In this document: in pieces, positions 6,517 through 45,235 of the stretch
How positions within the stretch are numbered: the first letter of the stretch is position 1
How the letters are laid out: every line of letters begins with the position of its first letter
Source of the DNA: Perkinsus chesapeaki ATCC PRA-425
Lineage: Eukaryota; Protista; Perkinsozoa
NCBI GenBank assembly: GCA_013115145.1
Contig: JAAPAO010000254.1
Location: 1 to 46,426, forward strand
Reading direction: 5' to 3'
Length of the DNA stretch: 46,426 nt
Position numbers and translations under genes: made by a program
Notes under the pieces: generated by a model
What the model was told of the DNA's origin: nothing
What the model saw: the letters and a program-made list of their open reading frames with translations, nothing else
Database searches by the model: none

Positions 6517-8690
6517 TTAGTATCTTCGAACCACAGTTAGTTCACATTTACAAGAATCATATAAGCCCACCTTACCAGCCTGCGGCGGCGGTGGACACCT
6601 CCACGACTCTTCATCGCTAGGGCTCTCATCTTCGGAGGATACACCAACACCATCAGCGACTGGGCCCCAGTAGTGCCGTTCAACTGCGAAAATAAGCGTC
6701 ACTGCGCCACGAAATGACCCAGCATATAGGAATCATCACATGAGGATACTAGGATTGGCAAGAAGCGTCGACACGGACCATAATCGCTATCATCATCGTC
6801 TACGCTTGATTCTGATTCTGGCTGCTGAGAAGGCTGCATGTTACTCGAACTCCAGTTCTCTCGGCGACGCCATAGCCCAACTGGGGGCGGGACCGTTACC
6901 TATTCCATTTTGAAAACCGAAAGGTCCCTGGTTCGATCCCCACCTGTGACCAAGCGGACACTTCCTCCTCCCATGATTCATCATCGTCATCCGAGCTTGT
7001 GAATTCACTGTCATCTTCAGATTCCTCTGTATTATTGAAATGTTGTCTTACAAGTATACACACTCCGCGTCGATTCATTAATCGATCGAGGGTAAATCAG
7101 CTATCACAGCCGAGGCTAATTAAAAACAACATCCAACAAAAAGCACATAGCAAATGTCGGAAACTTTTAATTCTGAAACAATCCATTGTTATAATGATTC
7201 ATGTCGAGCTACGAGGTGGGGGCTGAAATGAAAGAAGGCTCTAACAATTAAATCATTATGAGGCTGATCGATGTTGTTGGATTTGAGGATAAGGCGGTAA
7301 GTGAAGCTCATCATACAGCTGCCATGTTTCGAGCTTAAGAACACCAACTTGTGTAGGTCAGAAGATGACCATGAAGTTCAAGTAATTTAAAATAGCCATT
7401 GGAAAATGTTATTTACGATTCGATATGCCCAAGGTGAGTGTCGAAGTGATCGTCACGCGCACCAAAATTACTCACATTTTCGTCATCATCTTGATGATAA
7501 TCTTCCATAAGATTTGCTGTCAACTCGGACAACACCGCTGCCGAGGGCCGTGGATCACCCTCAACCATCAACGGCGATAACCTGAATCTTGCAGTCTTGC
7601 TACATCTAGCATTTTCTCAACGCACTTATGAACACCCTCCGCATTCCTAATCAGTGGTGCTCGAGCAAGCATCTCCTCGTCACAACAATCAGAATCGGAT
7701 GACCACCAATCGTCTTCGGGAATGGCAGCTTGAACCTCCGCTGAAAACAGGCGAATCTTGCTAATCTTACCTGAACTTGAGTTTCCTCAACGCACCACTA
7801 TTGAAGGCAATCTTTGGTGTGCTCCCTGCTGCGGCTTCCCGATGCATCAATTCCTCTTTTTCCTTTATCTTCCTGTAGACTTTTCGTCCTAGGCTGTAGA
7901 GGTAAAGAAGCTTATCATCCAATGACTTCAATTCTCGCCACTCATAATACGGTATAGCCATTACCACATACCTAACATATGTCGTATCTTACCACCATCA
8001 ACCTAAGATGCTCACCCTTGCAGCTCCAATAGCCGCTGGTGTAACTTTGACACTGATGTTCTCCTAGTGCTATCAGCGTAAAACCTGTCACAACAAAAAT
8101 CTTGCAACCTTACCAGATCTTACATTTCCTCAACGCTGTATTACGCATAGGGCCCTAGACATTCAACCACAACTTCTTGTTTGTGCTGTTTCTCTTTCTT
8201 GTTGCTCTTTTTCTTATTCATCATGCCATCATCATCATCTGGCCGGCTCATCTCCGCCGGTTCGACTCCTCGAGGATCAGCATGCATGAGGATATCCATA
8301 CATTCATTATCGACCAGAGAACGACTCTTCACCCCAACTTTCATATGGTCTTTCAATAACCAGTAACTGATTCGTCACACGCCACGAAATTCAGCAAGCG
8401 ACATCGTCGCAGAGATCAGCAAGCCCGTCAGAACACTTTTGAGGCTATGAATCTCATTGTCACCAACAACTCATTAAAATGCTCGTCCACCGGAGTTGAT
8501 CAAATATTTTAATCATAGATAACAAATACAGATACAGCTTCCCGAGCACGAAGAGAACTCGATCGATAACTCTTTGAATGGCGGCGGCATCGAGAATGTG
8601 CAAGTAAGGAGAAGCATAGATAATAATAACCGATACATACAATCTACTGTGAAACAAGAAATAGCGGCCAAAGCCCACCAAATTTACCAC
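6517..8690 (-). CDS. Multi-exon hypothetical protein with acidic stretches; probably extends beyond these limits (exon-like pieces at about 6230-10400)
   Basis: Exons join in frame across GT-AG introns, e.g. EEEVSAWSQ|VTVPPPVGLWRRREN (intron 6900-6943) and DDSYML|VERHYWGP (intron 6684-6718). No domain recognised. Confidence 0.5.
6900..6943 (-). other. 44-nt intron that is the antisense of a tRNA-like 3' half
   Basis: Plus strand reads TTGAAAACCGAAAGGTCCCTGGTTCGATCCCCAC. On the minus strand it is GTGGGG...GAATAG, and removing it restores the frame (SQ|VT). Confidence 0.75.
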
Positions 8691-11247
8691 AAGTACAACA
8701 ACTTACATTTCGTTCGCCCACCTAGGACGTATCCTTCTCGTTGGAGATTTTGAATTGGCCATAACAGCTCCAAAGAATGCTCGAATATCATTCCCGAATG
8801 TATCATCATTGTACCTTACTGGGAGTAGTAGAAAATCTTACCACCACTTGCTATCTTACATTTCCTCAACGACACCAGGCTTGGAATATTTCAGAATTTG
8901 ACATGCATTTTTGAAAACTCGTAATTGAGCAAGCTGCCCTGCTGGCACTTGGTTACTATTAACTGAAAATGGAGAATGCTTAATTAAGGCGATTGGGTAC
9001 TTCAAAAACTGATTAATAGACATGAAACATATGAGTTTAATAAGAGCAGGAGGAGGAGGTTATATTATTCCACTGGGGGCATCGATAACCCTCGAGATAC
9101 TTGAAGCATTAAATCATTTACACTTAACAATATCAACCATCGACATTATATTAATATATATGTATTCATCTGTTATGTACTTTACTTCAATTGCTATATA
9201 CAAAAAAACCAATAAGTATTCTGATGCAGTGAATTTGATGCCAAGTATCTTTCTACAACAAACTCGAGATTCGAGGCAACTCGCAGTTTAGGATCCCGGA
9301 CGTGCCACTTTTCGAAACTAGGCTTCTTTGCTGCCCACTGCGAGCATAGAAATGCCAATTGGAATCCCTAAACCCAAAACCCAATTATAAAAGTTGTCTA
9401 AACACACGAGCATCCGTTCACCCAGACGACCTCTACTCGAATGTCTCACCTTCTTTGTTATGCAATTTCCGTGCCATGATTCCCATTGAAGATTTACTGG
9501 CGAGTGAGAATAGGTCTTTCAATACAGCAGATGTTGATGGTAACTCATCCGCGAGGGAGATCATACTGTCACAACTGCTCAATTAGTATCCAACATTCCA
9601 ACATTACCTTTGAGCCAGCAAAGAGAGTGACTGCATATCAAATGTGTCATTCTCTCTTCCCTTCGTTCGAGCATTAACTGAGAGCGGCGGCGGCGGCGGC
9701 GATTAAACAAAAGTGTGGTATGAAGCTCATGTAACTAATGCTTACCGTCCTCTAATTCCAGCGATCGCCTCAATCGAGTTGCTACCGCTTCCTCAGCATA
9801 CATTCGCATTTTCCTAGATCGCCAATCCAATCGAGCTAACGAGTTTAACCCGACGGCAAGGGTCTAAATGAATGGGATATAGAGGAATACATCGAAGAAC
9901 TATTCGGCAGGAAATTAATACCTATCACACTAAACAACGGAGACTTCGAGAACCAAACCTCATGAGGCTGGAGGAGTGCCTCGTCATCCTTGAGGATGAA
10001 TACTGTAAACTAATGATAATTTTATTAACATATTATTATGTATTATCTTCACTATTAATAAGATTAAGGTAATGTCGATAAGTTTCCTACTCCTACTAGC
10101 CAATGTTAGTCCTACAGTGTATGTCTCACCTCCTGCCGTTGGACGTCAGCGTATCTTCTGCAATGTCGAGTGAACGCACGCGAAAGAATCTTTAAAGATC
10201 CACTATGTCGTAAATCAACCTAAATGATTCTGTTGAGGATATAAGATAGGCTACATAGCATGATTCCGTTGGCCATGCGATAGACTTACCTTTGCCATTC
10301 CATGAAGAACTAAACCGACCAGAAAGGGCTCTGAGCCCCAGCGAAGTTGAGGGTTCTAAAATGAGACCAGAGTCCTACGTAGTATACCAAATAGAACAGT
10401 CTGCAAATTACAGATAGATATATACACCCCTCCACACAATTTCAGCAAAATCGTTTTTCCCAGATATCCGTGCTGTATAAAGGAGTTTGAGTCTCCAATT
10501 CACATAGGGTTATAACAATACTGAGTCTATTATAACCCCAAACTGTTTCAGGTCTAAACTCGTCTTGCTTGCTGCGAACTAGAAAGTCGCACCAAAATTG
10601 TGCCGCAAATTCTTAGCATACACAACTTGAATTCGACCTAAAAAATGTCTTATTTCAATGGGGAGGTACCTTTGCATATGATAAAACGGCTGGGTTCAAC
10701 AAAAAAGGGATTGTGTAGGTGAATAATACGACAAGCTGATAGTATCTCCAACTACTAATAGTTTGTAAAGTCTAATCTCTCCTCCTCTATTACTATTGCT
10801 TTCTCAATTTCCCTTCCAACTGCATTCCAAAATGGTGCATGATATATCCCAAAGACTCCAGCTGCATTACATGATAATGCTATTATTAAAGATGTCCATG
10901 TTGGTATTCGATCAGGCAGACATAACTAAACAAACATCACAAACATCAAACTGTCAGAAGGATCATCATATTCTCGTCTAGGAAAGTGAATCTACCATTT
11001 AGACCTTAGACCTTAGAGAGTTATTTCATCAGTCTCTTGTATAGTATGCGTAGTAGAGTCGGGTGGTGTTGAAGAGGAGTGTTATAGCATAGATAATATG
11101 GCTCATAGGGGCATCGATCAACTAACTGCTTTAGACTGCATTATTCAAGATTATGATATGTTCTCATATCTCGCCGTGAAAGCATACTCACTAAACCCTG
11201 ATTTGTATTTTATTTAGTATTGCAGTTGTATGGGAAAGTTCAAGGGT

Positions 11248-13109: not shown

Positions 13110-13235
13110 CATATAGCAGGCATACAGCTACACATAGCAGGCATACAGCTACATATAGCAGGCATACAGCTACACATAGCAGGCATACAGCTACACATAG
13201 CAGGCATACAGCTACACATAGCAGGCATACAGCTA
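13110..13235. repeat. Minisatellite, 6 x 21 nt (CA[T/C]ATAGCAGGCATACAGCTA)
   Basis: Six head-to-tail copies differing at only one position. Confidence 0.95.
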
Positions 13236-13728
13236 GCTCTTAGGCCGGGCTGTGCGGCCACACTACTGTTGTGGTAACGCTGATACTCTTTTATCACTTC
13301 ATACCCCGACGGGGTCACCCCGTTCTCTCAGCTTCCGGCTGCTTATGCCACCACCAGTCAGAGGTTTCAGAGACGAGACGCCACTTCGACGACTCGGGCT
13401 CTATGGCATAAAGCCTATGCATCGTGCATGTCTCGTTTTTACATTTTTCATTCATTGCCCGATGGGCAATGCCCACTTAAAGCGGTCATCTCGAGTATAT
13501 CATTCAGGAGCCAATAACATACACGGGGACACACGAGTGATACTTTGCTGAATACGGTTTACGCATAATACTACCGGTTCGTTGGGACTGGTTTCTCTAT
13601 CAACAGTATTGTAGCTCAGTTCAAGTCTCGCAATGTTAACATTAGCTAGGGGTCTTCACGGGGGGCGATCTATCCTGCTACTAAGTCTTGCAAGCTTGCA
13701 GTGCATTGCTACACTTTTAAAGAGGTGA

Positions 13729-16560
13729 ACATGGTTATAGTCGAACAAAAAGCTTGCTATCATATTGCTCCCCTCAGTCATATCCCATCTGAGAGGTCCA
13801 TGAAGTCACCATTGAGTAGCTGGAAATGGTTTCATTTCTCACAAGTTATCGATCATTCTAAGGGTAGGTCCACGCGGGATATTACCTACACTCGTTGGTA
13901 CCAATAGCCAGCTCGTTGTAAAAATGGCATTCTTCAGAGGAACATCTTCTACGGTCCTCTGCACAATATGGTTCTTCGTATCACTGTTGTTGTAAGCGAT
14001 GCCTCTAGACAGGCCGACTGACTGCAATAAGTGACTGTGCTACAATAATTCGGATACATTCCCTTTATTTTACACAACTCCTTCCTGCAAGACGTAGTTC
14101 CAGAAACTCCCTCAGTTGCTCCTGTCAGGTCCGGAGCGTGGGGTTTTCAAGCAAGAATATCTCATGTCCGACGAGTTTTTCAACCATGCTAGACCGGTAG
14201 GGCTAAAAGCTATCTATTAATGTATATTAGTCTGATATCAGTTGATTTTTGTGGGCATCAGTGGTGTGGATCTGACTAAAGCACCTTTCTTTGAAGTAAA
14301 GCACGCCGCACGCCTAGCTATGGCGTCAGTATTCTCACTCGAACTGAGGTACATGCACGACATAGATACCACCAGACTTCAGGGATCAGGTATTCTGGTT
14401 CAACCTTCCCCATAAAAGATTTCTCTACTGCTACATTGAAAAGGTTGTTCACAAACCAACAAATGGTTGACGATGTCGCATTCTTCGGTGCCAAATTGAA
14501 GGCAAAGTACAACGGTGCGAAAATAGTTGTCTTTGGATGCAGCAGAGCTGGGGTATTATGTTTCTCCCACTGAACTAGCAAGACTCGCTCAATTCAGACC
14601 ATCGCTGCCTTGGCACGTCAGAGGTATCCTGATATCTTTCTCGGGGCTGTTGTATCTTCTGGTGCATTCAAGTTCAAACTGGTAGACGAGATGTAAGGTG
14701 GAAGGATGGGTTGTCTTCGCACAGCTCCAACTCAGAAGAGTTCAGCAGCTGAACTTCAGCTCCTTTCCGTTCACTGACTGATGTATTAAGTGAAACTACA
14801 GTGTAGTCACTACACTAATGTAGATAGCTTGTAGAACTTTTGCGGGGATAGCAATACTTGGAAAGTAGGCAAAAGTTAGTGTAGTTAGAAGTACGGCCCG
14901 ATATTGGTTTACGTATCCTACCCCTACCTCGAAATTGATGTCCCTATCCTACCCTTACCTCGAAATTGATGTCCCTATTCGCGAAAATGGTTCCCTTATT
15001 TGTGAAATTGGTGGCCTTTAACGCGAAACAGATTTCTGAAAAATGTAGTACTGCAAACCAAATGTACTTCTACGATGGGTTGATGATCGCCTAGAAGTCA
15101 GAGTAGATTGATCTCATCAAGTTGATGAGATCAATGATGGCTTCATCAAGTTGAATTTGCCTCAGTGATGTAAGACAACCATATACCTCTCATCTAGATA
15201 ACAACAATCTCCAATTGGCTGTGAAAAGCCAGTATCTTGTAGTTGTTTGCACACAATTTACAGCACTTGTGTGTGATATACAGTAGATCACTTGTAATAA
15301 GGTACAACCAAATCGTATCCCAAGACTTATCCAAACCAAGTCTGGGCGGTAGTTTAGAGTGCCTGGATGTGGTAAGCCGGTAGACAACAAGATTAATCAT
15401 AGGCTAAAAGTAGGTTGTTCAAGCCCACGCTGATCTCGCCCGTGCAATGATGGATCCTCAAGATCGTCGGGGCGTCGAGCAGAAATTAGGATTCTGTGAG
15501 GGAGTCCTAGAAGACGTAACAAATCAAGTGTATGCGTAAGCATGCAGTATTGCGTTTCAAACATCGAGGCACCGCTTCAGCACAAGCGATGGAAGCCTCC
15601 TTGGAATGTTGGTGCAGGAAAATGATCCCTTTTGTAAGCACGATTACTGCAATATAGACAGGGTCTGTGGCAGGCTTACAAGGAGCGGGTAAGTACAGGA
15701 TTCAGGAGCCTGCATATATTACTATATATTCAGTAATGAATCACCACTTGATAAGCTTGCTGATGTTTACAATACGAATGTCCCGCTACGACCCCGCACG
15801 TGTCGACAGAAGAGGGCAGATAAGTTGATCAATTTGTAGGTCGGATCTGAGACGAAATGTGCATATCGCTGGTTTATGTCACATTTGGAATAATACAATG
15901 TATTCAATGTATTCTCAGGCTCAAGAATGAGACCAGCTCGAACGTCAGTAGAATGAGTATCTTTTACATATGCCACAGTCGCGGCCTTTTTGCTGAGTGT
16001 AAGGAAGGATCATGTCCTTTTTATACTGGGTTTAACAACTGGGTTGATTTTTGGTTAATGGTATGCCATAAGGGCTTTGGCTTGCCGAGAGAGCAGGTAA
16101 ATATAGCCGGGTGAGAGAATAATCTTATGAACCCCAAGGTACTCAAGAACGTTCAAGTAACCCGAAAATACGTTGAAGAAAATCTTCACGGAGCTACTAA
16201 TATTCTATTGATTAACGGTGACACTGATCCTTGGTATCCACAGTCGATTACTCGTGGCAGACCAGGCCTGGAAGTGATGAATGTAGAACAACTGGCATAA
16301 CATAATTACATCAAGCAAGTTGTTGATACGTGTTTAGGTACCTAACGAGGCACACTGTGCTTGGTGCCACATGCCCAATCAGTAAGTGTCGAAGCGATCC
16401 CATTTCTTAATGATTACCAGCCGAGGGATCTCCCAGAGCCTGTCGCACATTTCTCTAAAGATATCCCAGTTCTGCCTACTCTCAATTCGTATCTACTTTT
16501 CTGATCAGACGTGTCGTAGAAGGTATCCATAATGCGGTGGGGAAGTGGACAATCGCGTGA
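13729..16560 (+). CDS. Serine carboxypeptidase family S28 (PRCP/thymus-specific serine protease-like), multi-exon
   Basis: Spliced motifs in the expected order: WFHFSQVIDH; SLELRYSGSTFP; QQMVDDVAFF; IVVFGCSRAGTIAALARQRYPDIFLGAVVSSG; ATNILLINGDTDPW; EAHCAW. The start is approximate. Confidence 0.85.
14914..14975. repeat. 2 x 31-nt direct repeat inside the S28 gene (intron), followed by degenerate 21-nt-like units
   Basis: TATCCTACCC(C/T)TACCTCGAAATTGATGTCCC occurs twice with one mismatch. Confidence 0.85.
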
Positions 16561-16880: not shown

Positions 16881-17510
16881 TTAGCTGCTGCATTGGCTCA
16901 ATCCTTTTATCAGACTGAATTCGCCAATAACATTGAATAATTGATGGACTAACTTCAGTACAAACTCACGTTGTGACACAATCAAATATCTAAATTAAAA
17001 ATCACTCTGCTGGGAATCGAACTCGCGTCCACCTGGGCTTGTGCCGATGGCGCATAAACCGCCACCGTGTTCAGATGTAGATTGTAGGTGAACCGCCGGT
17101 CTATTATGGATGTGATATTATCATTGATCTATTGTTGATAGTTGTTTTATTTTCATAATGCCACATTCATTCGACCCTTTTAATCAAATGCCCACTGGAG
17201 ATTATTCCAATTCGGTTCATATAACCATGATGGATTCAACAACTCCACCAAAGACATCAGGAGGAGGGAAGTCGTTGGACGAGGCACAAAGCGATATCGT
17301 CGGAAATCTTGATCTTAAAAAGTTCAAGATAATGGGAACACCATCAACTGTAATAGTATCTTTATCATCTCTGAAATGTACACTTCAATCTCTCTTAGCT
17401 CTCCGTGTTTTCTGACACCTCTAGCGCTGTTATCTCTACACCAGAGCCAGAACCACAATGCCTGCTTGCATGTGGAGTACTGGGCAAGGGTCGTGTGGTT
17501 ACTATCGGTC
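16881..17510 (-). CDS. Small multi-exon hypothetical protein
   Basis: Joinable exons ...YNLHLNTVAVYAPSAQAQ|IFDCVT|TLIKGLSQCSS-stop across GT-AG introns. The 5' part is unresolved. Confidence 0.35.
16990..17032 (-). other. 43-nt intron made of a tRNA-like T-arm/3' end plus T-run
   Basis: GTGGACGCGAGTTCGATTCCCAGCAGAGTGATTTTTAATTTAG on the minus strand. Confidence 0.6.
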
Positions 17511-20102: not shown

Positions 20103-21056
20103 ATGGCTGCAAAGCCAGCTGCGAAGACCAAGGGTGAGAGACGCGGGTTCTATCCTCGGTGAGGGTGTTTTGTGATTTACTTAGGAAAGGAGATCAAAAC
20201 GAAAGGAATTCAAAAGAATGGGAAGAAGAATGCACACATTCATAAAGAAGGTAGTTTTCGAGAGGCATGCAATCTGACCTATTGTGTATCTTACCGGTTT
20301 CGGGCTTAGATACCAGAAAGAGCGAGTCTTCGACCGAGTCGATCGATGACATTTTCGGAGCTTTGAAGAAGGCACCAGTAAAGTTGAACCATGCATCTGA
20401 CGCAGAAAAAGATACTTCCAACAAAGCGATATCAGCTTCGTCATTATCGTCATCATCATCAATTCGGCCAAAGGGGCCCCTTGACGACCCGCTTGGACTC
20501 GCAAACCAATCAGAAGGGTCTCGTAAAAGGACGGAGGAAGGTTATAAAATATACACCGAAGAGGAACTTCGTATAGGAAAGGGAGGAAGTAATAATAGGA
20601 GGGGCAGGGGGGAAAGGTATAATGGTGTTATTAATAAGAATGAGATGTTAGATTGAATAATACTAAGGTATTGAATCAGTTCATCTTTCAAGTTGGTAGA
20701 GGCATGCTTATTAAACATATTAGTATAATAATAATATATAGCTCTGATCGGTCGTCCAAATAATCGTCCCTTCGTCACCGACTCACAGTATTAGTTATTT
20801 AATATAAAGGCTGCTTTCATACAGTTACTCGGCTAACTGTATGATCTCTTTTTCGACCCTCCTGTATACCCCCTCACTCAGAGTAACTCGAAGACTTTCC
20901 AAAATGTATTAGCAATTCGATTTGGTTTATAATGTCGAGCTTTAATACAAGTAGTTCAGCAAATAGGGCTCTTTAGTGGGGGGGCTCCATCTTAACCTAT
21001 TTAGTATCTTTTCAGATACTCCCGATTGTCCGTTCGATTGTTGGTGTTGTTTCTAG
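20103..21056 (+). CDS. DUF1764-family eukaryotic protein of unknown function
   Basis: Starts MAAKPAAKTK. Contains DDIFGAL, SRKRTEEGYKIYTEEELRIGKGG and, after an intron, TPDCPFDCWCCF-stop (21054-21056), the DUF1764 C-terminal signature. Confidence 0.85.
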
Positions 21057-21174: not shown

Positions 21175-23653
21175 ATGTCATCTGATTCTCTTCCTTCGGG
21201 TTGGACCCGATACACTACCGATGATGGTGAGGAATATTTCTTTAACGAAATTACCGAAGTAACTCAATGGGATCGGCCCACTCAACCGGCAACACGAGCC
21301 AGCGGCGGAGTAGGGAAGAAGAAGAATAAGAAGGATAAAGGAGAGTAATAATAACAGCGATGGACTACTGGAAATGCCCGACTAATAATAACGACTATGT
21401 GCTGTAGACGATTTGGATGGTAATTTGTAATAATAAAATATTATATATTGGTTAATTGATCACATTCCGGCAAACGGTTCGAGGGGGATTAGGTTGAACA
21501 AAGTAATTGGGTATAGAGTGGCTTTGCATCAGGTATGTCCCGATCGATGCTGGAGCTTTGATGGACGAAGGTTTCGAGGCTGCAGATGATAATGACACAA
21601 GAGGGAGTATGCCTCCGTCTCAAGGTAATTACGTGGCGCGTGACTGGAGCGGATAACTCGATGAAATGTTCGTGTGAATTGTGGGAAATTGGATGAGATT
21701 AAGATAAGGCAAAAACAATAGAAGAAAATTCAGAACAGAAATTTAACTCGGGTTTTTGGGGTTTTCGGGTTTCTTGGGAAGAAATTTCTTCATCAGGTCC
21801 GATCAAATACGACGTTCCGATGGTAAACTTCGGAAATGATTCAAACACAACAACAGAGGGGGAGGAGACGAATCCAAATCGATCAGCCGATCGATCCAAA
21901 GTCCTCAACCTCGACGGGCAACTAGATTCAGCTCCGAAGCGTTCAACTGGGGCAGAAGATGCCCCACAGTCCTCATCATCATCAACTGGAAGTTGGCTTT
22001 GGTCTAAATTGACTTGTGGACTGACATTAAGTTATATACAGGATAACTTCTTTGATGTAATAGGTCCCGGGTTCGATCCCTGACTGAAGTGTTTTCATCA
22101 TTTTTAGGTTACATCTCGCGATGTTCAGGGTCGTCTTTTCCTTGCAATGTGGCCATACAGGTGACTAAAATTTCCCGGAATCTCTGCAGATTTTTTTATT
22201 TTTTTTCTGTCAGGCTCTCTCTACTATCGCCAAGCTCATCCCTTCATTTGCCGTCTCCCGGTGGTTCTTCTCAAACCGGCGGTCGAATCGCTCAGTTTTT
22301 CGGTTCACATTTTGCGGATTCTATCCAGTTGTTATCTTCATATAGGAGCAATCCTGACCTCTGGGGTAATCGAAAGGTCCCGAGTTCGAATCCCGCACCT
22401 GTCATCAATTTTCAGGCCCGTTTTGGATCTGTACAACTGCTGTTATTTTTCTCACCGCGACCGCTAATTTCTCTCGTCAATTATTGGGCGGGAATGAAGA
22501 GAAAGGTCATATCACAGATTACACTTTAGCGGGTAGGTCGTGGGTTCGATTCCCGACTCGTGCATTTTTCCTCTAAAAATATTCCATACAGCCTTTATGA
22601 TAAAGGTAAAAAATGTACGACTAATGATTTGGTAATTTACGATGCTTTTTACATTCCTTGTGTATACCGCGATACAGACAAACTGCCGGCGAAGGATTTC
22701 CTGAATAAATAATTGAATGCGGAGGAATGAGTGTGTTGTATTTGTGGTTGGTGTCAGGCACCGCGTGGTTTGTCCTATTTGGTGTCATGATACTCGGTCC
22801 TTTAATCACATTAGGGCTTCTTGTATGGGCTACGAATCAGTCGGGGAACTCTGAATCGGAAGAGTCTGGCTGGTGGACAAATCTTCCAGCATGGCTTCAA
22901 CCGGGGACAGGACGACACAATACCTATGTTATTGATGATAGCACTACTAATACAATTGATAACTATGCTGTCCCTCCAGCTCATGGTCAGACAGGTGGTG
23001 GGAAGACATCTCTTTGGCTGTTATTAACTAGTGCTTATGGTTACAGTATGTCGGTGATGCTGCCAATGTCAATATTATGGATAGTACCTATTGGATGGGT
23101 TAAGACATTGACCTGTGCTTTAGGGTAAGAGGAGGAATAAGTGAGAGATCGAAGCATAGGAACTAGGAAGAAAGTTGCGAAGCTTTCAGAAAATAACAAA
23201 CTAGAAGAGTAGTTTGTAAAAATATAAAATATGACTCTATGAATGCTGTAATTTATGTGGGTAATTATTGGTATTAAACCATCTGTAAAGTGAGCAGCTG
23301 TAGTGGCTTTATCAACTCTGTTTCGGATGCATCCACCGAATTTCGGTGTTTTAACATAGTAGATTTAATAAGCAGCTGGTTGATGTTATTTCAGGTTCCT
23401 AACTGCGATGGTTTTCCTTTATATAACCTTATTACGTACAGGAGGAGTTGATGGTACTGCGTCTGGTGATTCACCAATACTTCAGAGATTGGGTGTCACC
23501 ACTTCAAATGCGAAGACTAGGGTACAAGTTGCTTTAATAACTGCTTTGGTAGCTGTTGTGATGGAGGGAGGTATCTGGGCTTCATGCAGGTAAGATACAA
23601 AACAGGTCAAGAATGTTACTAGTGATTTCTTTAGGTTATATTTTCTCGCTTGA
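21175..23653 (+). CDS. WW domain + Yip1 domain (YIPF1/2-like) membrane protein, multi-exon
   Basis: N-terminal WW domain LPSGWTRYTTDDGEEYFFNEITEVTQWDRP. Spliced Yip1 motifs FFD|VTSRDVQGRLFLAMWP, NPDLW|GPFWICTTAVIF and SAYGYSMSVMLPMSILWIVP. Ends CR|LYFLA-stop. Confidence 0.85.
22057..22107 (+). other. 51-nt Yip1 intron with tRNA-like T-arm and T-run
   Basis: GTAATAGGTCCCGGGTTCGATCCCTGACTGAAGTGTTTT...TAG. Removal gives FFD|VTSRDV. Confidence 0.85.
22366..22415 (+). other. 50-nt Yip1 intron resembling a tRNA 3' half
   Basis: GTAATCGAAAGGTCCCGAGTTCGAATCCCGCACCTGTCATCAATTTTCAG. Removal restores the conserved PDLWGPFWI. Confidence 0.9.
22533..22757 (+). other. Yip1 intron starting with a tRNA-like T-arm/3' end plus TTTTT (acceptor 22757 preferred, 22591 possible)
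   Basis: GTAGGTCGTGGGTTCGATTCCCGACTCGTGCATTTTT lies directly after the donor. Acceptor 22757 gives DYTLA|GTAWFVLFG. Confidence 0.75.
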
Positions 23654-23699
23654 ATGCGGATAGTATTAAAGCTGGCAGCAGACTAACTGTACTTTTCTG

Positions 23700-24275: not shown

Positions 24276-24295
24276 CTAGTGTCGTAGAGGCCGTC

Positions 24296-27054: not shown

Positions 27055-27199
27055 TTGCACCGCCGATTGAAATCAACAATTATAATATGATTTTCTCACA
27101 TTTGTTTATTGCGTTTGAAGTCACCAACAAACAGAATTATTGGGGCAAGCGGTAGAGGATGAAACGATCGCAAACCAAAAGTCGATTAAGATTTCACAG

Positions 27200-29370
27200 G
27201 AACACGGCCGCCATCACCCCAACCGTCGTCTCCCTCTTTCCACAATAAATAAGTGTTATCTGCAGTCCTTTGAAGGAAAGTGTACGCTGACAGATGGCTG
27301 ATGGCCTATCACTATAATACCGATATCCTTTGCTAACTTATCATCAAGTAAAGTGCGACGAATTCAACAGTCTGAGCTCGCGCCTGCTAATAAACTACTA
27401 GTATTGTCTTACGTAAAACTCGGTATTGTTATGAGTAGTAATACTATACAACAAAATACAAAATAATTGATATGAATGAAAGCATAATCATGCAAACGAC
27501 CTGCCAACGCATGGATTCGTGAACCCTTTCAGTTCCGGATCGTTCAAGACTTTCTTTACCCCAACAACAGCTGCGAATATAGCGCTTGTTACCACGACCA
27601 CCAAAAGGAGAAGAATCAGCCCAGATTGGCGACCTTAATGAGATACTGGCAAATCTGTAGAGATGCGCGGCTTACCATGTCTTTCGACAGCCTTTGTGAT
27701 ATAAAGTGTTCCAAAAAGTGCTCCAAGAAAGGCTAGGATTCCATAAAGCAGAGTTTGGTTACCAACGAGGTGACCTGAATTGGAGAAGACTCCCCTGAAT
27801 TGCTCGATGTCATTCAATTCCGAACTGCACCGCCGTTGGGATGAACAACATAATGGATGCGAATCTACGACGAGCTCTTCAGACTATCAATACTTGAGAC
27901 TCAATTTCGCTAATTTGTCGAGAAATAAGAGCCCACTGTATCACACCAATAACGAGCTTGCACAAAACAATATTCTCACCCTCCATTGCCAGTTGCCCCG
28001 CAGCTATACTGCTGGTCATAAGCACTGCTATGGCTGATGTCGCTGTTGCCACCGTTGGCTTCTTACCAAGGCTCAACAACAAAGGACCGAATATCATACC
28101 ACCACCGATGCCGATAACAGCACTAGCCATGCCACCAAATAGACTTAATAAAGAATAGGCCATTATAGAAGGTCGATGATGAGGACGATGAGGGTGCTCA
28201 GGAGTTGACACTTCACTTGGAGCAGAGGAGACACGAGTGCCTTGTCTGAAGAAGTTTCGGACTAATGTATAAAAAAAACTTTAAGATTTCGTAATAGCTT
28301 AAATCGATTCATAATAATTAAAAGTGAATATTGAGTACTCCAGTGAGCTATATTATGTCAAGTTACCGTTTACTTTTCTTCTTACATGAATGATATTATC
28401 ATTAATATTCCAACTGCTGCGGCCATCACCATCCAATAGGTCGAAGAGCAGATCTCGAGACCTGCCGTCGCTACCAATTCGATATTTTTAGGTCTTACCG
28501 ATGACTGAGGGAGTCCTATGGCCTCCGAGAATGAGCGTGATTAGCCACACCATCGCCCAGGAAGCCACCAACTCTCCTCCAGTGGCAAAGGAGCTTCGCT
28601 CCGCCTGCACGACTAATTTATTCAATGAATTGTTCTCTGTTAGTAGCGGTCTGTTCATCGAGTTACGATATTCTTTTCTCCTGCCAAAGGTTGTGGGTTC
28701 GAATCCATGGCGGGCATTTTACCTTGCTTTTTGGAACCTCCCAAAAGCTGAATAGGCAACCCATAGAAGAACGAAGACTGTTAATAAAAGAATGAACCAA
28801 TCTGGGCAGGACTTGCTGATCATCACACCTGACATGGGTTGAGGTGAAGAGTAATACTACTCGGTGGAGTGGAGTACTTTATAATAAAGATGGGGATAGC
28901 TGGAAGAGGAGAGGCTTTGTTAATACTGGGTTGTCAATTAAGAGGGAGTTCGAGGAGAAGAATAGTTAAGTCCAGAAATTAAAACCAAATCTATTTAATT
29001 AATTCAATATCGGTTTTATGATTGAAATGTGATGAATCCCAGCAAAGACACTTCTCGAATTTGGCAATGGAATCTTTTATCATTCTCTCACCGATTATCG
29101 TTCCAGCATTAGCCGCCGGCACCATGACAAGGCACGCTCCATAATCAACCAACCCAGACCTGACAAAAGGACCGCCGCTGCGCCACAAAACTAATACGAT
29201 CATTGCAACCTGATATTAACCATAGCTGCCGCCACTGCAGCGAAGGTTACGAGAGTGACCGAAAGTGCCGCACTTTGATGAGCACCGAGTGGAGCCGTAA
29301 GACCGAAAATGCCACTGTTAATAAGGGGAACGAATACCCCTCCACCGCCGATACCTAAAAGAGAGTATGA
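27200..29370 (-). CDS. Sulfite exporter TauE/SafE family membrane protein, multi-exon (ends approximate)
   Basis: Two GIGGG motifs (GIGGGGVFVPLI; SAVIGIGGGMIFGPLLLSLGKKPTVATATSA), plus LVDYGACLVMVPAANAGTIIG, CPDWFILLL and many transmembrane segments. Confidence 0.85.
28681..28722 (-). other. 42-nt intron that is entirely the antisense of a tRNA-like 3' end plus TTTT
   Basis: Plus strand CTGCCAAAGGTTGTGGGTTCGAATCCATGGCGGGCATTTTAC; minus strand GTAAAATG...TTTGGCAG. Unspliced it gives an in-frame TAA; spliced it gives FQKA|RRKEY. Confidence 0.9.
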
Positions 29371-30666: not shown

Positions 30667-33200
30667 TTATCCAAGGCCAATCTTACGGAACTTCGCTCCG
30701 CCGTTGCCATTGCTCATTTTTCCTGGATGTTTCCCAACCACCCTTCGGGAACATATCTTTTCCTCAATCCACTCGACCAATCGTTTCTTCCGTTTTTCTA
30801 TCAAACTCTCCCAATCGCCTTCAAGAGGCAGCAAACAGGAATACTTCTCCACCATCCACCGCGATACTTTTCGGACTTCCTCATCGAAATGTTTCGAAGG
30901 CCAAGACACGAGTCTTCGATCCTTGCAAATATGCGCCACGAAATTCACTACCGCAGAATCGATCGATACATCTGCCCGACTCGACGACGACGATGTGGAT
31001 TGCTCGGGAGGCCGCTTCTCCTGGTAATTTTGTGGCGCGTGACGTTGCTTATCCCTAGGTGGCGCTCCCAAATAGCTGAGTCCCTTGAGGGGCTGCCTAA
31101 TATTTTTCTGATAAACTGTTTGTGCTCCTAATAACTTAGATAACGAAAATCTCCCGGGTGCGCTCGCCACATTGGTATCCTTTTTCGGCATATCTTCACG
31201 CTTCAACCTCAGCTCGAAGTCTGCAGCCTGCCTAAGCGTATCCTTCAAGCCTTCATTTTCAGAATCGCTCGAAGACTTCATCGGTCTCCACTGCACACTT
31301 TGCTTCACCCTCTTCATTCGCCGACCCCGTCTGCCCACCGTACGTGCCTTTCGCTTAGAGACTGCCCCGATCAACAAGTCTGGCTCTGCCTCCTCCGTCC
31401 GGCCGATTTCAACATCAACTCCTGCAGTTTTCAACTTGGCAGCTGCCGGCATTTTCCCTCCACTCGATAGCCTTGTCATCCTCAATGCTCGAAAACTCAA
31501 CGGCACCGAATGGACCGAGGGCCACAATGAAGGGCCCAATTTCATCAGTAATGAGGAAACCTCCCCAACTTCCATAGGGTTCAAATTTGTCCCCGAAATA
31601 TCAAGTTCGCTCAAAAACCAAGCCAATTTGGGCTGCTTCGCTCCGCTGATCTTTTCAATTTTTTTACCATAACTGATTTGAGCCGCCTTCAAAGACCTCA
31701 TTATTTTACACACGCTTTTTGCAGTCACAATCGTATTGTCTACAAAACTCACCTTGAGCAGGCCTCGTCCGTTTTCTAATACCACACTTTTCTCAACTTG
31801 CATATCTTTCCAGGATAACATTGCCGTCACAACGCCCTTTTTAACCTCCCTCACCAACCCACTTTCATCTCCATTGTGCCCCTCGACCACGCTGTCGGTG
31901 ATAGCTATCTTGATGGTGACCTCTGAAGGGTTTCCTGGCGCAGTGACGCTGATATAAGTCGGCAACACAGTCTTGGGCTTCGGCTTTTCCACAAGAGCGA
32001 CTTCTTTCTCATCCTCATCGCTGCTACTCGTACCAAGTTCAATGATATCTTTGGGTTGACCCGCGCAAGATTCATCCAAGGTCTCTTCAGGTACACTACA
32101 AGAGCTCGGTGAAGTCTCCGGTGAAATGATATCCTCTTCATTTGATGAAGTCGGCGAAGGAAGCAGATGACTGTGTCGCGGACAGAATACCTGCCATCAC
32201 CAAGAATCGAACCCGCGACCTCTTCGGTTCCCCTTTCACATTGCTAAAACGTTTGCCGCAGCCGACTGCCCAGTCTACTTCACTACGATTCAACCATTCA
32301 ATCGTTTCGTTGGGCCACTCGATGGAAGCCATCAGATAAAACATCAACGAACAATCTAAAGGCTGTTCACTTCACGGCGAATGTACGTTCTTAACTAAGG
32401 CGCGATTGTCATGTCAACACTACGACAAGAAACATACCACCTCGCCGCCGACCCCTCAGAATCTTTCAGCGACGACGAAACTATCGGATGTTCAATCTCG
32501 GTGGAGCGCGGAAATAAATCATTTTCAGTGTCATCAGGAAATTCCTACTATCGACTTACCTCCCCATCAGGCACGCAGTCGTATCCGGCGCAGAAGGGAT
32601 GGAATGGCGCGTCACAGGTCTTCACATTCGATCCACTTTTCCCCTTCCTCTTTTTTGCAGGTAACTCCGGTGCGTCACACAACAGCATTGTCCCTCTCTG
32701 GTCTGCTGGTGCTGCTTGTATTATCGTATTACCACATATTGCACAACGGTAAGTATCCAAAGACTCTTCAGATGAAGAAGAAGAAGACATGCTGAAAAAA
32801 TCGAAACGTAGAACACTCAAACGAACTGAGCTGGGTAGATCTATGGTAAAAATCTCATTTCTTTGAGGGAGCTCGAGAGTGAGTCGGGCTTGGAAACTAC
32901 CGGAGCGATTAAACGGAGAGTAAAGTAGTAGCATAGACTAGAATTGCTAGTGCGACTGATATCCCTCATTCCCATACTACTTATCATCATCATAAAGTGT
33001 ATCAGCCTGTTTAGCTTCCTGCACTTGTATAACTTGTTCTATTATTAATTGCCATTTGCCTATTGATCCATCTCCTCCTCCTCCTCCTTTATTCAGACTA
33101 TATTCAGCAACGTAGTGTATTGTGGCACGACAACTCGGACAGGAATTCTCCCTTTGAATACTCCAGTGCTGACCATCAATAATAAAACCATCGACCAACC
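30667..33200 (-). CDS. RING + PHD finger protein (PHRF1-like architecture), multi-exon; 5' end unresolved
   Basis: RING end WSIQRENSCPSCR; PHD CAICG...LLCD...CDAPFHPFCAGYDCVPDGE|VFCPRH; long 470-aa terminal exon ending in a helical region reminiscent of an SRI domain (inference). Confidence 0.72.
32191..32232 (-). other. tRNA-like 3' half forming the 3' end of the PHD intron (intron 32191-32559)
   Basis: Minus strand GAACCGAAGAGGTCGCGGGTTCGATTCTTGGTGATGGCAG|GTATTCTGT. The terminal A plus the next G form the acceptor AG. Confidence 0.7.
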
Positions 33201-34309
33201 AGATAAACCATTTTTGCTGTTTCTATTCATTACTTATACAATTTATGTAAGACTACTTCAACGAAGATTTGTGTCAAATGCATTTCGCGGCGAGTGACTT
33301 TCGACAAAGGCATGCGTGGTCGGAAAACACAGGGGACAAAAAGGTGCCAACAATGCAATGTAGTTTTACCGTAGAAGTTTTGCGTGTGACATAAAAGATA
33401 CGTTTTGATGCGCTTTGGAGATCGTTACTGCTGCTGACACGGATAGATCCGAAAGACTATCATAAAGTTGATAAATCCACTTATATATCTCATAACCCGA
33501 GACAGCTTGATTCCCAGATCAATGTCCAATACAAGTTGATTAAAATATTATAAAGTTAGTATTGCTACTCATTAGCAACTACCTTATAAGAAGGAAACCC
33601 CGAAAGATGAGGAAACTGAGCTACACTTGTAACAGTTCCACAGAGATTACGGTGACAAATTCTTAAGTATAAGATATTCCCTCCACTATTACCTCCAAAC
33701 ATCCAACATGAAAGGCATGCTCACAGCAATCCATTTTAGCATAACGAGGAGGCCCGTCTATAGATGCCATACCACACTGGTCTTCATTAGAAAATATCTC
33801 GCGGCAAATGGGACACTCGAGCGGGGTGCCATTAGCCGAGGCGAATCCAGCTTCAACGAAGGAAAGCTGAAATGGAAAAATAATGAAAGGTGCTGAATTG
33901 AGCTAGTCAGCTGAGCAGATATAGGCGAGAGAAGAGGAGGGATATGCAATTATATATAGAAATGATTACACAATGGTCGAGATGGGTATTAAGATACCTT
34001 AATTCCTCAAGGTAGGCCTCGAGAGAGAGTGAGAATGCTGAATCAGTAGCCTATATTGAAGCCTGTATTGTGAGGGTCCATAGAATTAGTGTCCAAAGCA
34101 GCCCCTTATGTGGTATTAGCACTCAAATGCTTGAATTGGCAGCTTGCCAAAATACTCACCTTAAAGATATCAAATGAAAAATATCTGATGGAGCTGATAA
34201 CGGCTGTGCATGCATTTCAAATAGTACTTATAATGTTAGTAGAGAGATGAATGATAACCACGTAAAGGTGAGCCCCATGCCAGTACCTCTTGTTTGAAAT
34301 GCCCTTTAC

Positions 34310-35408
34310 TTAATAATCTTGATGAAATCCTCTTTGGTGGCATAGAAGTTTAATGATAATGGCCATTAGACGATGCAATAGACTATGACTTGAATCTCTC
34401 AGACCTCTAGCACCTCTGGCCGTGATATTTAATAACACCTTTTCTACATGGAATCGAATGTATAGCACTACTTCCATAGAACCATCTCTAGTGGCCTTTA
34501 CTAAAATTATTCGGGCAACCTGCTTCACACACTAAAGCGGCCATTGCTTGAATAATAACTTCTCCTTTATAACAATACGAATATGAAATATAAGTTAAAA
34601 TCCCTTAACAAGTATAATTTATTTTCCTTTGATTGTCATGACAACAATCGATAATATGCATCGGAAAATATCGAATAAATCGACCCGATTATATGGGCTT
34701 TGTCAGATAATATCTTTACCTTTATTTCCTGTACCACAAATACAGCCGAGTTAATTGGAAAATATAAACACAACGAACTTGAGATTTCAAGCAAAATGGT
34801 ATTAATCATGTTACATCATAGATGGACTGGAAAGATGGGGATTAGGTTGCCTGCGAAAAGATATGCGAAGCTAACAGATGTTTCTATCTTACTGCCAAAA
34901 ATCCATCTAACCTCGTTATGAGGTCCTCGGAATATGCACATAACTTGACCTGTTTTGTATCTTGCAAGGCTCGACCATGAGATACTTCTTCAATAATCGC
35001 TCCGATCATGTCATCCAAACACTTTTGCAATTCTTGTCCTGCTTCATACAAGGTCATCGGGTCTAGATTTCGACCTTCTGCGCATCTTGTCAAGTTAACC
35101 TCGGGAGAATCTTGTAATTTCACCAAGCTTAAGCAGGATTTCACACTCTTCGTAAAGATTCGTTTGTGTCTGCCATGGGCTAGCTCGAGATGGAAGACTG
35201 CCCAACACCGAACTGTGCGATTCTCGACTGCATTTGCGACGGATGTTCTAACGACCCTGATACTAAATGGTTGGGCGTATCTTCGAGGTTGACCTTGCAA
35301 GATGCAAAATAGGTCAGCTGGTGCGTCATCAGTCATAACCTCATCTGGGGCTATCTTGAATTGTTTTACTGTGGATTGCCTTTGAGAGAATGCAGCACCC
35401 ATTACCAT
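34310..35408 (-). CDS. Multi-exon hypothetical protein; possible N-myristoylation start (MGAAFS)
   Basis: 174-aa ORF followed by a further exon-like ORF (34310-34528) on the same strand. No domain recognised. Confidence 0.5.
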
Positions 35409-41045: not shown

Positions 41046-42150
41046 TCACTTCTCACTGAAGACAACCAGAAACACAAACATCAATAAAGAGATGACGTCA
41101 TTCGTGTGACTTAGGAACGCAACATGAAGAAGGTTCGTTCGAGGAGAGTTTGAGGAAGCTGCTGTAAAGCTCAAGTACAATATAAAATGAAAAACGATCT
41201 GATGAAAGGACTGGTGCGGCAGGCCCGATGGTCCATTCCCGAAGATGAGCGGAGAAGTCTGAGAAGCCTGCCTATAACTGCCTACCGAGTGCGGCTCGGC
41301 AGGCACCACCACAAGTCACCAACTTACCAAACTAAGTAGAAAGCTTGTTCAAGTACTATAAATCTTAAAGGGCTCTACTGCCCATCCCTTTTCTTGAATA
41401 TTCCGTGAGCGCGGAGGAGCTTTATGAGAGAACTTTCATGCGTGTGTTCAAGTTTATTAACAACTCGACATCGTATATCCATTTATTATATTTACACTTT
41501 TAATAGGTTTGTTTGATACAGTTTTCAATGATAAGAGTGACTGACTACATCGTCTGTGCAGGTCAGTGAAAACAGCAGTATAGTCACATGTAGCCGATGA
41601 TCGGTACAACTTCTACAAAAATATACAATCAATCGAACGCTTCATTCTTCAATCTAGACAATTATTTCGTTGTTATCAACATCCGCAAACTCCGCGCTTC
41701 CTTCGACTTGGGATGCCTCCCGAAGCTCATCCTTGCCGCGTTGATTCGGCGTGGTGGGTGCAAGATCCGCCGAGCTCAACAAACGAATTCTACCCACCAA
41801 GGAGGCATGGTCGGAAGTTCGGTTACTAAAATGGAGGTCATGAGGATCGAACCCGCGACCGTCTGATTGAAGGACTCACGTATTGTGACTGTTGATTTGC
41901 TTCCTTAACCCTTTTTCTTCTTGTTTATCACCGCTAAGCATCGCTCTAGCACAAGCATTTCTGAGAGGAAGGTCGGCTCGCCACATCTGGGCTGGAGCAA
42001 CTGTCACCATCATAACCTACATCACAAAGCAGCACTACAGAAATATGTCTGTAAATCACATTGAGCCATTTAAAAGTCATTCCATCATTCTCAACGATGG
42101 GGATATTCCAAAACGACTTGGTGTTTCTCAGCAACTCCTTTGAATATCAT
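41046..42150 (-). CDS. Hypothetical multi-exon coding region (separate gene or 3' extension of the EEP gene)
   Basis: In-frame join MLSGDKQEEKGLRKQINSHN|TNRTSDHASLVGRIRLL across intron 41826-41879. Confidence 0.45.
41826..41879 (-). other. 54-nt intron made of a tRNA-like 3' half plus TTTT
   Basis: GTGAGTCCTTCAATCAGACGGTCGCGGGTTCGATCCTCATGACCTCCATTTTAG. Unspliced it gives an in-frame TGA. Confidence 0.8.
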
Positions 42151-42689: not shown

Positions 42690-45235
42690 TAAATTATAAA
42701 CAAAACCAAATAGGTAATACATTTCCAGTGAGAATAACGTAGCTCGACCTTCATGTCTTGCCAGCAGTTGCCGTTTAGTCCCGAAAATTGGCATTCTGTT
42801 CCGAGCTCACCTTGACTGCCTCCACATGACACCGGACTAACCGCACCGCTTTTAACCCACAAGTAATCCAATCGTTTCGGACAAGACGGGACATCCTGAA
42901 CACCTTATACCTTTCACGCGCCACGAAATTCCCTACCTGGTCGCTTGTTACACCATATTTCGCCAGAGTTTCATCGCTCATCTCTCCCCAATTCCCCTGA
43001 TAACTCGGCGGGTGCGGCAACCTCTCCTTATCGGCGTGCAATTGCCAAACATCCTGGAAGCCCGCATTGCCGAGGAAGTCCTTGACCCTTTCATAAACGC
43101 TCGTTGGTTTATTCGTTATTAGACTTTCTGTTTCTTCAGATGACAGAGAGGTGCTACGGCCTGTTCGAGTTGGGGAGGGAGGGCACCGAATGGAAGACTG
43201 AAAAGGGTCGAAATTCATCTGTGGCACTCGAAACACACTGCGCTGTCGGTAAAGTCTTCGGTTTGTCTATGTGCAAATAATGCGATAGATAGGTAGTCTA
43301 ATATAGAATCAACGATACACCGCGTAATAACATTATTGACCTATTATTTTGTTAATATATAACTTGATATTATTTATTTTACTACCAAACTTTATTACTA
43401 CTGCCACGTCGTCTATCGGCCCAAGTATAATCACTATTAAATAGAGACTTGAGTATGAATTCCGATGCGGACTACTTAAAGTATAGTAAAACCCGACATA
43501 TGAATTGGATGTCGAATACTATACAGACGATACCCGATTCACTCCATAAGCAGTCGAGTAAGCCATATCGACCCAACAGCTCTCCCCTTCCTCTATCACC
43601 TTATTCCTCTTCCCCTCCTCCATCATCTTGTCTCGTCCAGTTCCATCAATATTCCAATCACCAGTCATAACAGCTGCCGCAACACGCAAGCCTTTATTAG
43701 CACATTCCTTCTCCAGATACGCTACAACGTCCAATACGACTTTCTAAAATTTACAAATCAATTATAAAAATGCCTCCATGAAATGCTACCAGTTGTGCGA
43801 GCTTGACATCGGAGTCGTGGCCTGCATCGAGATGGGTCGTAGCGACTATCACCACCTGAACAGCGTAGATCATCGACCGGGAAGTGCAATGATGATTGAC
43901 AAAACCGTATTTAGGAATCCTAAGCATTATTATCGTATTTAGGAATTCAGCCCAAGCAAAAGACAGGCTTTTAGGATAATTAAGCCATTTATCATACTTA
44001 GTACGTTCGAGGTACCGTTGGATAAGGAACTCATAGATTATCGAATCACATTGAATACCACAGAACTTCTAGAGCGGAAAAATGGAAGCGGTTACTGTTG
44101 GAAGCTGCTACAAGCTGATCACATTTATCGATCCCTGGCATTATTAATATTACATTAATATTATGCCATATTTCCTACTGCTAATACTGTATTACTTTAA
44201 TTAAGCAGCATCAACTTCCCACAAGTAAAGCATTTAATGATCACTTCAGCTGTACGAATCTATCTTATACAAGAATTTCTGTCGCTCGAGTAACACTTCT
44301 TGGGCTCGCAAGTACAGGAAAGCCGGCGAGGGTGGATAGATACCGCATTGAGCCTCAGTGATAGAAATCGAATAACCACCATCCATAAGGTATTACATCA
44401 CTCCCTCTATCCAAAACAACCCCAAGGGCTCCTTTAGACGCCATGGCATCCTCGCCAGTGGCAACAGTAAACCTATTAAATCTGACAAAAAAAAAGAATC
44501 ACCGAGGATCGAGCCAGAGACCACTTACTTTTCCATGAGTATCGGCCACCTCGACATTATAATCAACCCCGAGTCCAAGAACTTAGTGGGTGCCGAACAC
44601 TCACAAACATGTGTGCCAAAAGCTTTAGTAGAGTATTTCAATTGGGTATCTATCAACCATTATATCATTTATTATAATCGATTTCTCCTTTTCGTCGCAC
44701 AGCAGCCACTTAGATAACGAAACGCACCCAAAAGACCGTCTGGTGATACGGACACTCCCACGGAGTTATATACCTCTAAGCCCTTAATAAGCATGAAGGT
44801 GACACATACTGTTGAAAAGGCTACACATATCCTAATATTACTAAGATTCATGTGCAAAACGAAGTAGAGGAGCGCAGCAGCAGCCTCCACCATAAGACGG
44901 CTCAAACCCCAACGGGCCCCATGACCTTAATTTTGACAAATTCCCTTTGAATTTCAAATCCATAGAATTTACCGTATGACAAATAGTATTTTTATGCCTA
45001 ATGATTAGCAAGACCATTATTACGGTTCTGAACATATCGGACGACTTCTCCTCTCGCAAAGAACCTCCCACAAAATAAAGCATTTATCATGCTTGCAACA
45101 GCCGACTGCTGATCCGTCCACGCCTCTTGAAGTGTTATTACCTGAACACGAGGAGTTCTCATCTACAACACCACCAAATTTCGTGATGATAACTTGACGG
45201 TTTCGATAATGAGCGCATAGACTTCTCGTGTACAT
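42690..45235 (-). CDS. Endonuclease/exonuclease/phosphatase superfamily, sphingomyelin phosphodiesterase (neutral SMase)-like, multi-exon; ends approximate
   Basis: Spliced motifs KFLDSGLIIMSRWPILME|KFNRFTVATGEDAMASKGALGV, AAVMTGDWNID, GFQDVW and PKRLDYLWV. The terminal SDH motif was not located. Confidence 0.8.
44482..44528 (-). other. 47-nt intron with a degenerate tRNA-like T-arm and a T9 run
   Basis: GTAAGTGGTCTCTGGCTCGATCCTCGGTGATTCTTTTTTTTTGTCAG. Removal restores SRWPILMEKFNRF. Confidence 0.75.

Follow-up and report, generated by a model that had tools for sequence, protein, structure and literature searches.

The 46,426-nt contig JAAPAO010000254.1 of Perkinsus chesapeaki ATCC PRA-425 (the whole stretch is called the window below) carries a family of very short spliceosomal introns that consist mostly of the 3' half of a tRNA gene. 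Perkinsus is an alveolate parasite of bivalves and is sister to the dinoflagellates. We consider it highly probable that these introns are real and ancient, that the relics within them are tRNA-derived, and that the core of the relics is under selection. The half-tRNA introns are deletion remnants of whole intronic tRNA genes (demonstrated for one intron, suggested for a second), because an ortholog in another lineage keeps the whole decayed tRNA gene with its A-box. The complete chain, including a last step in which the relic would serve as a site for TFIIIC, a factor of RNA polymerase III (Pol III), appears to us evenly balanced between right and wrong.

For comparison, syntenic loci were obtained via orthologous proteins, and the synteny was shown. 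Two of them are from P. olseni (L001 and L004), one, L003, is a Logan contig of a third lineage with an M60 protein 83% identical to a P. olseni protein, and the others are L006 and L007. In the search for homologs with a 153-aa exon open reading frame, a word-based search gave nothing and an exhaustive search found the orthologs. Twenty-six copies of the tRNA-like element, called the module here, were drawn from the window and four related loci and were aligned in register, ungapped. The 37-nt module matches tRNA positions 44–80; its consensus, AGGTC-NNGGG-TTCGAWY-CYNNN-(7 N)-N-TTTT, corresponds to positions 44 to about 78 and comprises the variable loop AGGTC, the T-arm/B-box GGGTTCGAWYC, eight unconserved bases, and a T-run. 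G53, T55, C56, A58, and C61, the invariants of the B-box/T-loop, are the same in all 26 copies, G45, C48, and G57 are each conserved in at least 90% of them, and the T-run begins at position 74 ± 1 in 21 of 26. The copies have in common positions 44–62 (about 19 core bases) and the T-run; the acceptor-like bases are unrelated, and the modules stem from several different tRNA types. The whole sample comprises about 30 modules in about 140 kb, with a density of one per 3–5 kb in the window, L001, and L003, and a lower one in L004, L006, and L007.

An initial annotation of the window had named nine sites with a tRNA-like variable-loop/T-arm motif. Allowing up to one mismatch, the window has 17 matches to GGTTCGAWYCC, where 2.09 are expected, and not one of 100 shuffles had as many. 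A covariance model that uses sequence only, based on the 26-module alignment and run over the window, returned exactly ten strong matches (E 6e-7 to 1.5e-3). They are the nine named sites, at all of which the longer module is present, and one more at 20138–20174. A chance origin of the module is ruled out by the motif count together with the E-values of the model. The ten sites are the following.

6900..6943, minus strand: 44-nt GT-AG intron of a RAP/U-box gene; the core (6922–6940) reads on the plus strand, antisense to the gene.
16995..17031, minus strand: intergenic copy of the module, with the S28 peptidase and M60 genes on either side; E 2.3e-6.
20134..20184, plus strand: 51-nt GT-AG intron of a DUF1764-like gene; sense module with the loop variant TTCTATC; E 7.6e-6.
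22057..22107, plus strand: 51-nt intron of the WW-Yip1 gene; sense module; frame restored on removal.
22366..22415, plus strand: 50-nt intron of the WW-Yip1 gene; its module is sense and similar to the 3' half of tRNA-Val(CAC).
22533..22757, plus strand: 225-nt intron of the WW-Yip1 gene; module at 22535–22571, 2 nt inside the 5' end.
28681..28722, minus strand: 42-nt intron of an unannotated TauE-family gene; antisense module; frame restored.
32191..32559, minus strand: 369-nt intron of a RING/PHD-like gene; sense module with the core at 32203–32221, 12 nt before the 3' end.
41826..41879, minus strand: 54-nt intron of an Exo_endo_phos gene; sense module plus an anticodon-arm remnant; frame restored.
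44482..44528, minus strand: 47-nt intron of the same Exo_endo_phos gene as 41826; sense module; frame restored.

The loop variant TTCTATY, in which G57 is replaced by T, is found in at least three independent modules (window 20146, L006 9427–9460, L007 6937–6969, and L006 7386). We know of no real tRNA with this loop; whatever reads the module seems to tolerate it. The next-best match of the covariance model (E 0.008) is a B-box-like AGGTCGTTGGTTCGAACCG at 17892–17919 on the minus strand, which lies antisense in the coding exon of M60. P. olseni has it too, and it probably reflects coding conservation plus chance. A second, palindromic intron motif, TTTCCCGGAAA, showed no enrichment.

Removal of the module-bearing segment restores the reading frame at nine of the ten sites (for 6900–6943 the match of the covariance model has E 7.6e-5). 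The exception is 16990–17032: no open frame spans it, both neighbouring genes lie on the plus strand, and the covariance model finds no counterpart of its module in L001 or L003. It is an intergenic relic and not a demonstrated intron. Thus, the nine GT-AG introns claimed in the initial annotation stand at eight sites, with the frame restored at seven as listed and at 22533 with an extent corrected to 225 nt, and the intron at 20134–20184 (plus strand), absent from that list, is added. Introns 41826 and 44482 share one gene and do not belong to two.

The splicing itself is seen in RNA contigs that come from a relative, 85–92% identical to the window, and not from P. chesapeaki RNA. They skip 22057–22107 and 22366–22415 exactly from GT to AG, so that for these two introns the predicted splicing is borne out in the relative. 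They also exit the window at 22535 and resume at the exon beginning at 22758, and for this reason intron 22533 is given 225 nt. Its module stands at the 5' end, and after splicing the frame is continuous. In the RNA-supported part of the WW-Yip1 gene, three of six introns carry a module. At the protein level, the exon junctions are conserved with P. olseni for introns 28681, 32191 (...VPDGE/VFCP.HS, in L004), and 20134 (MAAKPAAKTK/GKEIKTKG; the slash marks the junction), and with the third lineage for intron 6900.

Introns of Perkinsus are known to be short, most of them below 100 bp (PMC3101222). Of the nine module introns, seven measure 42–54 nt, of which the 37-nt module makes up 69–88%. 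As to the two long ones, 2 nt separate the core from the 5' end in 22533, and 12 nt separate it from the 3' end in 32191. The 5' splice site GTAGGT of intron 22533 overlaps the variable loop of its module, and that of intron 28681–28722, GTAAAA, is the complement of the module T-run. In respect to the host gene, seven window modules are sense and two (6900 and 28681) antisense; over the orthologous groups of all loci the ratio is about 14 to 3.

Orthologous sequence is available for nine window module introns (6900, 20134, 22057, 22366, 22533, 28681, 32191, 41826, and 44482), and each of them recurs at its position elsewhere in the genus, in P. olseni or another lineage, with the module or a decayed trace of it. 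Both L001 and L003 keep the module of introns 22057 (at 15398 and 14067, respectively), 22366, and 22533 (at 16008 and 14687). It is also kept in L004 for 32191, in L003 for 6900 (antisense, at 3130–3164), in L006 and L007 for 41826 (at 9427–9460 and 6937–6969), and in L006 for 44482. In the case of 20134 it is intact in L001 (13207–13242) and decayed in L003, while for 28681 it is partly decayed in L001. In the third lineage, the ortholog of intron 6900 (L003 3059–3160, plus strand) has a length of about 113 nt and carries a tandem pair of T-arm-like motifs, both antisense. The four-fold degenerate sites of the M60 exon are 27–44% identical between lineages, which means that neutral divergence is saturated.

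The origin of the half-tRNA form is seen most directly in L006, where the ortholog of the 47-nt intron 44482–44528 measures 94 nt. A whole tRNA gene, now decayed, fills it apart from about 10 nt at either side. Its TGGCCTAGTGG is the only exact A-box match (TRGCNNAGTGG) in the 15.6-kb locus (0.24 expected) and precedes G52 of the module by exactly 44 nt, the spacing that is canonical for tRNAs; the 51 nt concerned are precisely what P. chesapeaki lacks of the L006 intron. The relic is no longer called a tRNA by ARAGORN. In the case of intron 22366, the orthologs in L001 and L003 are 160–190 nt long and carry the module at the 3' end with D-arm-like remnants upstream, and the module of this intron agrees at about 24 of 26 bases with the 3' half of tRNA-Val(CAC), a real gene of P. 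olseni; this is only suggestive of a second deletion of a 5' half. The long L003 version of this intron also gave the sole tRNA-like Rfam result, a weak mascRNA match (E 1.8). Two intact P. olseni tRNA genes lie in L004, namely tRNA-Gly(TCC) at 2397–2468 (plus strand) and tRNA-Val(CAC) at 157–231 (minus strand), the former antisense within the span of an annotated AFG1/MCU gene.

Within the window no 5' halves were seen. The A-box occurs at chance level (14 matches, 13.2 expected), ARAGORN finds no tRNA gene, Rfam gives no match at its gathering thresholds, and its E-value mode gives no partial tRNA match in the introns. No complementary 5' acceptor strand was found upstream of the modules (the two real tRNAs score 7/7) and no hidden 5' halves were found in the upstream exons. 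The initial annotation was right that the elements derive from tRNA, as indicated by a consensus spanning positions 44–62, the T-run at 74, the tRNA-Val match, and the A-box in L006. Its observation that matching 5' halves are missing holds for the window and fails for the L006 ortholog, which keeps its A-box. An insertion of halves is not supported: the half state arises by loss of the 5' half from a whole intronic tRNA gene.

The same annotation took the introns for tRNA fragments or a tRNA-derived short interspersed element (SINE) captured as new introns in this lineage. More widely, tRNA fragments, SINEs, or introners might insert in exons and create introns, now or recently. The near coincidence of module and intron edges in both orientations would fit such insertion, as would the 94-nt L006 intron, which is nothing but the tRNA relic and its short flanks, and the variety of source tRNAs in a genus one member of which, P. 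marinus, carries an unusually high number of tRNA gene copies (PMC3706591). However, every intron tested is present at the same site in two or three Perkinsus lineages whose neutral divergence is saturated, the similarity between copies is limited to the core, and there are no target-site duplications, no terminal inverted repeats, and no shared body or tail. The half form, moreover, was made by deletion and not by insertion. By these comparisons a recent insertion is already refuted for the introns tested, and we give ongoing or recent insertion hardly any weight; in a distant perkinsid ancestor, insertion of tRNA genes may have given rise to these introns.

Introners and introner-like elements have been described in Micromonas, fungi, dinoflagellates, and Amoebophrya (PMC9860276, PMC12130899, PMC7789003); the introner surveys mention neither tRNA nor Perkinsus. 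The modules resemble them in being a recognisable family in many introns of unrelated genes, here in a relative of dinoflagellates. Introners, in contrast, are near-identical, lineage- or strain-specific recent insertions with target-site duplications, terminal inverted repeats, or other inverted repeats, whereas the modules share about 19 bases, occupy orthologous positions, and shrink by deletion from whole tRNA genes. The introner class was rejected, as the copies are not near-identical along the element and no recent presence/absence is seen between relatives. With tRNA-derived SINEs and intronic tRNA pseudogenes the modules have in common the tRNA ancestry, the Pol III B-box, and the T-run, but the half form has no A-box, no SINE body, and no tail like that of a long interspersed element, its sources are several tRNAs, and the copies appear to be kept by selection. 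A tRNA-derived SINE was rejected on the chance level of A-boxes in the window and the lack of shared sequence past the T-run.

Selection was assessed in ungapped orthologous comparisons against P. chesapeaki, with the adjacent acceptor-like bases as an internal neutral control. In the core (positions 44–48, 51–59, and 61) 128 of 150 bases are identical (85%), whereas in positions 66–85 of the same modules the count is 69 of 200 (34.5%; Fisher p=2e-22). The antisense modules are retained too, with 13/15 and 10/15 core positions. When intron 32191 is compared with its L004 ortholog (369 and 211 nt, respectively), the module is the only well-aligned part. Judged by the difference between the core and its neighbouring bases, the core is kept by purifying selection, with some lineage-specific decay.

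Neutral persistence would have to come from a low local mutation rate, from recent and independent pseudogenisation of intronic tRNA genes that had long stayed functional, or from gene conversion by the many real tRNA genes. Some modules are indeed decayed or deleted in one lineage, and the genome is rich in potential donor genes. Against this, the bases adjoining the core have diverged to the neutral level of 34.5% while the core stands at 85%, a recently dead gene would retain all its parts, and conversion would leave a paired T-stem and real acceptor sequence, neither of which is seen. Homology tracts of 11–19 nt are also too short for efficient gene conversion. We therefore regard neutral relics as very unlikely.

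What is conserved in the module is sequence: the universal B-box/T-loop bases, AGGTC upstream of them, and the T-run downstream. Taking the five T-stem pairs over all copies, 69% of cells are paired, versus 73% with the 3' strand shuffled among the copies, and double changes are confined to one pair. The three outer pairs are open in 10–14 of the 26 copies, and the inner pairs 53–61 and 52–62 are mostly intact. The module introns fold no better than their shuffles (z from -1.1 to +0.9), and, read from the sequence, the T-loop does not fit a branch point, either by the yUnAy consensus or by pairing with U2. A functional tRNA gene was considered and rejected, as there is no paired acceptor stem and the T-stem pairing is at the shuffled level. 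Because there is neither covariation nor excess folding, a B-box acting at the DNA level is indicated, of the kind known from extra TFIIIC (ETC) sites. In agreement with such a site, the B-box consensus GGTTCGANNCC is present without a functional Pol III gene, and between species the core is conserved at 85% when the flank is at 34.5%. We infer that the module is a DNA element, a candidate B-box-only TFIIIC site of the ETC type; this is the least certain step of the interpretation.

Several observations weigh against it. Any one copy is dispensable, since modules decay in some lineages: besides the decay at 20134 in L003 and at 28681 in L001, the window intron near 8960–9100 lacks, or has in scrambled form, a module that both L001 and L003 carry, and one L003 module is deleted in the window near 10375. 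AGGTC (positions 44–48) and the T-run at 74 are conserved and yet lie outside the classical B-box. The sense bias of about 14:3 and the intronic location of nine of the ten modules are not directly predicted by a strand-blind chromatin site. The two real tRNA genes, unlike the relic modules, have no T-run right after the discriminator; the module T-run may for this reason be a splicing feature instead of a terminator. Taken together, the sense bias, the intron location, AGGTC, and a T-run far from the splice site fit an RNA role or residual Pol III transcription at least as well.

Such an RNA role would mean that AGGUC..GGGUUCGAWYC plus the U-run acts in the pre-mRNA or in the excised intron, be it as a splicing enhancer of very short introns (through G-triplets and the U-run), as a T-loop mimic for a tRNA-binding protein, or as the precursor of a small RNA resembling a tRNA fragment. 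Beyond the strong orientation bias, it would account for modules that are almost solely intronic and hard against a splice site, for a T-run that keeps its fixed spacing even in intron 22533–22757, where the 3' splice site is 200 nt away, and for the mostly intact inner T-stem pairs. The absence of covariation, the erosion of the outer T-stem to chance, and the lack of excess folding energy in module introns speak against it, as do the conservation of antisense copies, the missing complementary 5' acceptor strand, and a T-loop that is unlike the branch-point consensus. On balance an RNA-level function seems to us rather unlikely.

In our best explanation, the course of events is as follows. 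The modules are relics of whole tRNA genes that resided within spliceosomal introns of a Perkinsus ancestor, and deletion of the 5' half gave the half-tRNA form, as demonstrated for one intron and suggested for a second. Continuing deletion pressure would then have shrunk the introns to splice signals plus the constrained module, yielding the 42–54-nt introns that are mostly module and longer ones with the module hard against one splice site. The minimal introns would be explained by deletion that spares only these two components. A deletion model would likewise explain why the 5' splice site meets the relic at a variable point (tRNA position 26 to 43), why GTAGGT overlaps the variable loop in intron 22533, and why modules are pressed to one end of longer introns. 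The constraint would act on DNA, the module being a putative B-box-only TFIIIC site left by a dead tRNA gene, and the T-run could still be a Pol III terminator. The sense bias might come from compatibility with splicing, the T-run doubling as a pyrimidine tract, or from avoidance of head-on polymerase conflicts.

Yeast ETC sites are conserved between species. ETC sites consist of a B-box only in yeast and human, and those of C. elegans coincide with CeRep3 tRNA-pseudogene repeats and are over-represented in introns (PMC6950938). Of the elements described so far, ETC sites, those of C. elegans foremost, and introners, the Amoebophrya ones included, come closest to the modules. The Perkinsus modules are similar in having a B-box consensus without a functional tRNA, in deriving from tRNA genes, in being intronic, and in their conservation between species; by sequence they are candidates for a class that is defined also by TFIIIC occupancy without Pol III or TFIIIB. 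Unlike ETC sites, the module comprises one half of a tRNA gene and a T-run where the tRNA ends, occurs about once per 3–5 kb, fills most of a 42–54-nt intron, abuts a splice site, and is strongly sense-biased.

In trypanosomatids, U-snRNA and 7SL genes have tRNA-like promoter relics upstream, with both A and B boxes kept. There, as proposed for the module, a tRNA gene remnant is retained only for its internal promoter boxes; the modules differ in lying inside introns of genes transcribed by RNA polymerase II (Pol II) and in keeping a B box and T-run. The short intron whose body is one functional non-coding element recalls mirtrons and intron-hosted snoRNAs, but no RNA structure or processing signal is supported in the modules. 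Full-text searches of PMC and bioRxiv on tRNA-like or tRNA-derived introns and on Perkinsus introns or tRNA genes turned up no account of the module introns.

In the widest reading, Perkinsus genomes might hold on the order of ten thousand selected half-tDNA elements recruiting TFIIIC/Pol III in introns and shaping transcription, splicing, or chromatin, with tRNA-gene insertion as a major source of introns; whole-tRNA introns of about 95 nt would decay into half-tRNA introns of 42–54 nt. The figure of ten thousand is an extrapolation from one module per 3–5 kb and not a genome-wide count, and we hold this extension to be possible but doubtful. If true genome-wide, it would make these the densest known set of selectively retained tRNA-derived elements in protein-coding genes and a natural example of the minimal-intron limit, in which an intron is splice signals plus one constrained element. 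It would also provide a testable link between TFIIIC and Pol II genes in a transfectable, editable protist, and it would bear on the co-evolution of introns and tRNA genes in the lineage leading to dinoflagellates.

The module introns also expose annotation errors around them. The NCBI annotation of the contig looks incomplete at 27100–28950 and 32240–34700 (both minus strand). No gene is called for the TauE-family host of intron 28681–28722, although it is annotated in P. olseni. FOL47_004479 has its start ATG within the 369-nt intron and is given a module intron of 49 nt (about 32191–32239), whereas in the P. olseni ortholog conserved RING/PHD exons further upstream are part of the gene. At 17696–19993, a 765-aa open frame is 100% identical to the NCBI protein FOL47_004477. 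Pfam scans of the short exon peptides flanking introns 41826 and 44482 gave no matches.

P. olseni and L003, although syntenic in the rest of this region, have nothing that corresponds to the S28 peptidase gene (13633–16385, plus strand); this is a local rearrangement or insertion. The intergenic module at 16995–17031 sits just downstream of the gene. Finally, the RNA contigs that match 21500–25100 are closer to the window than P. olseni is, which indicates that the public runs include the transcriptome of a close, unsampled relative of P. chesapeaki.

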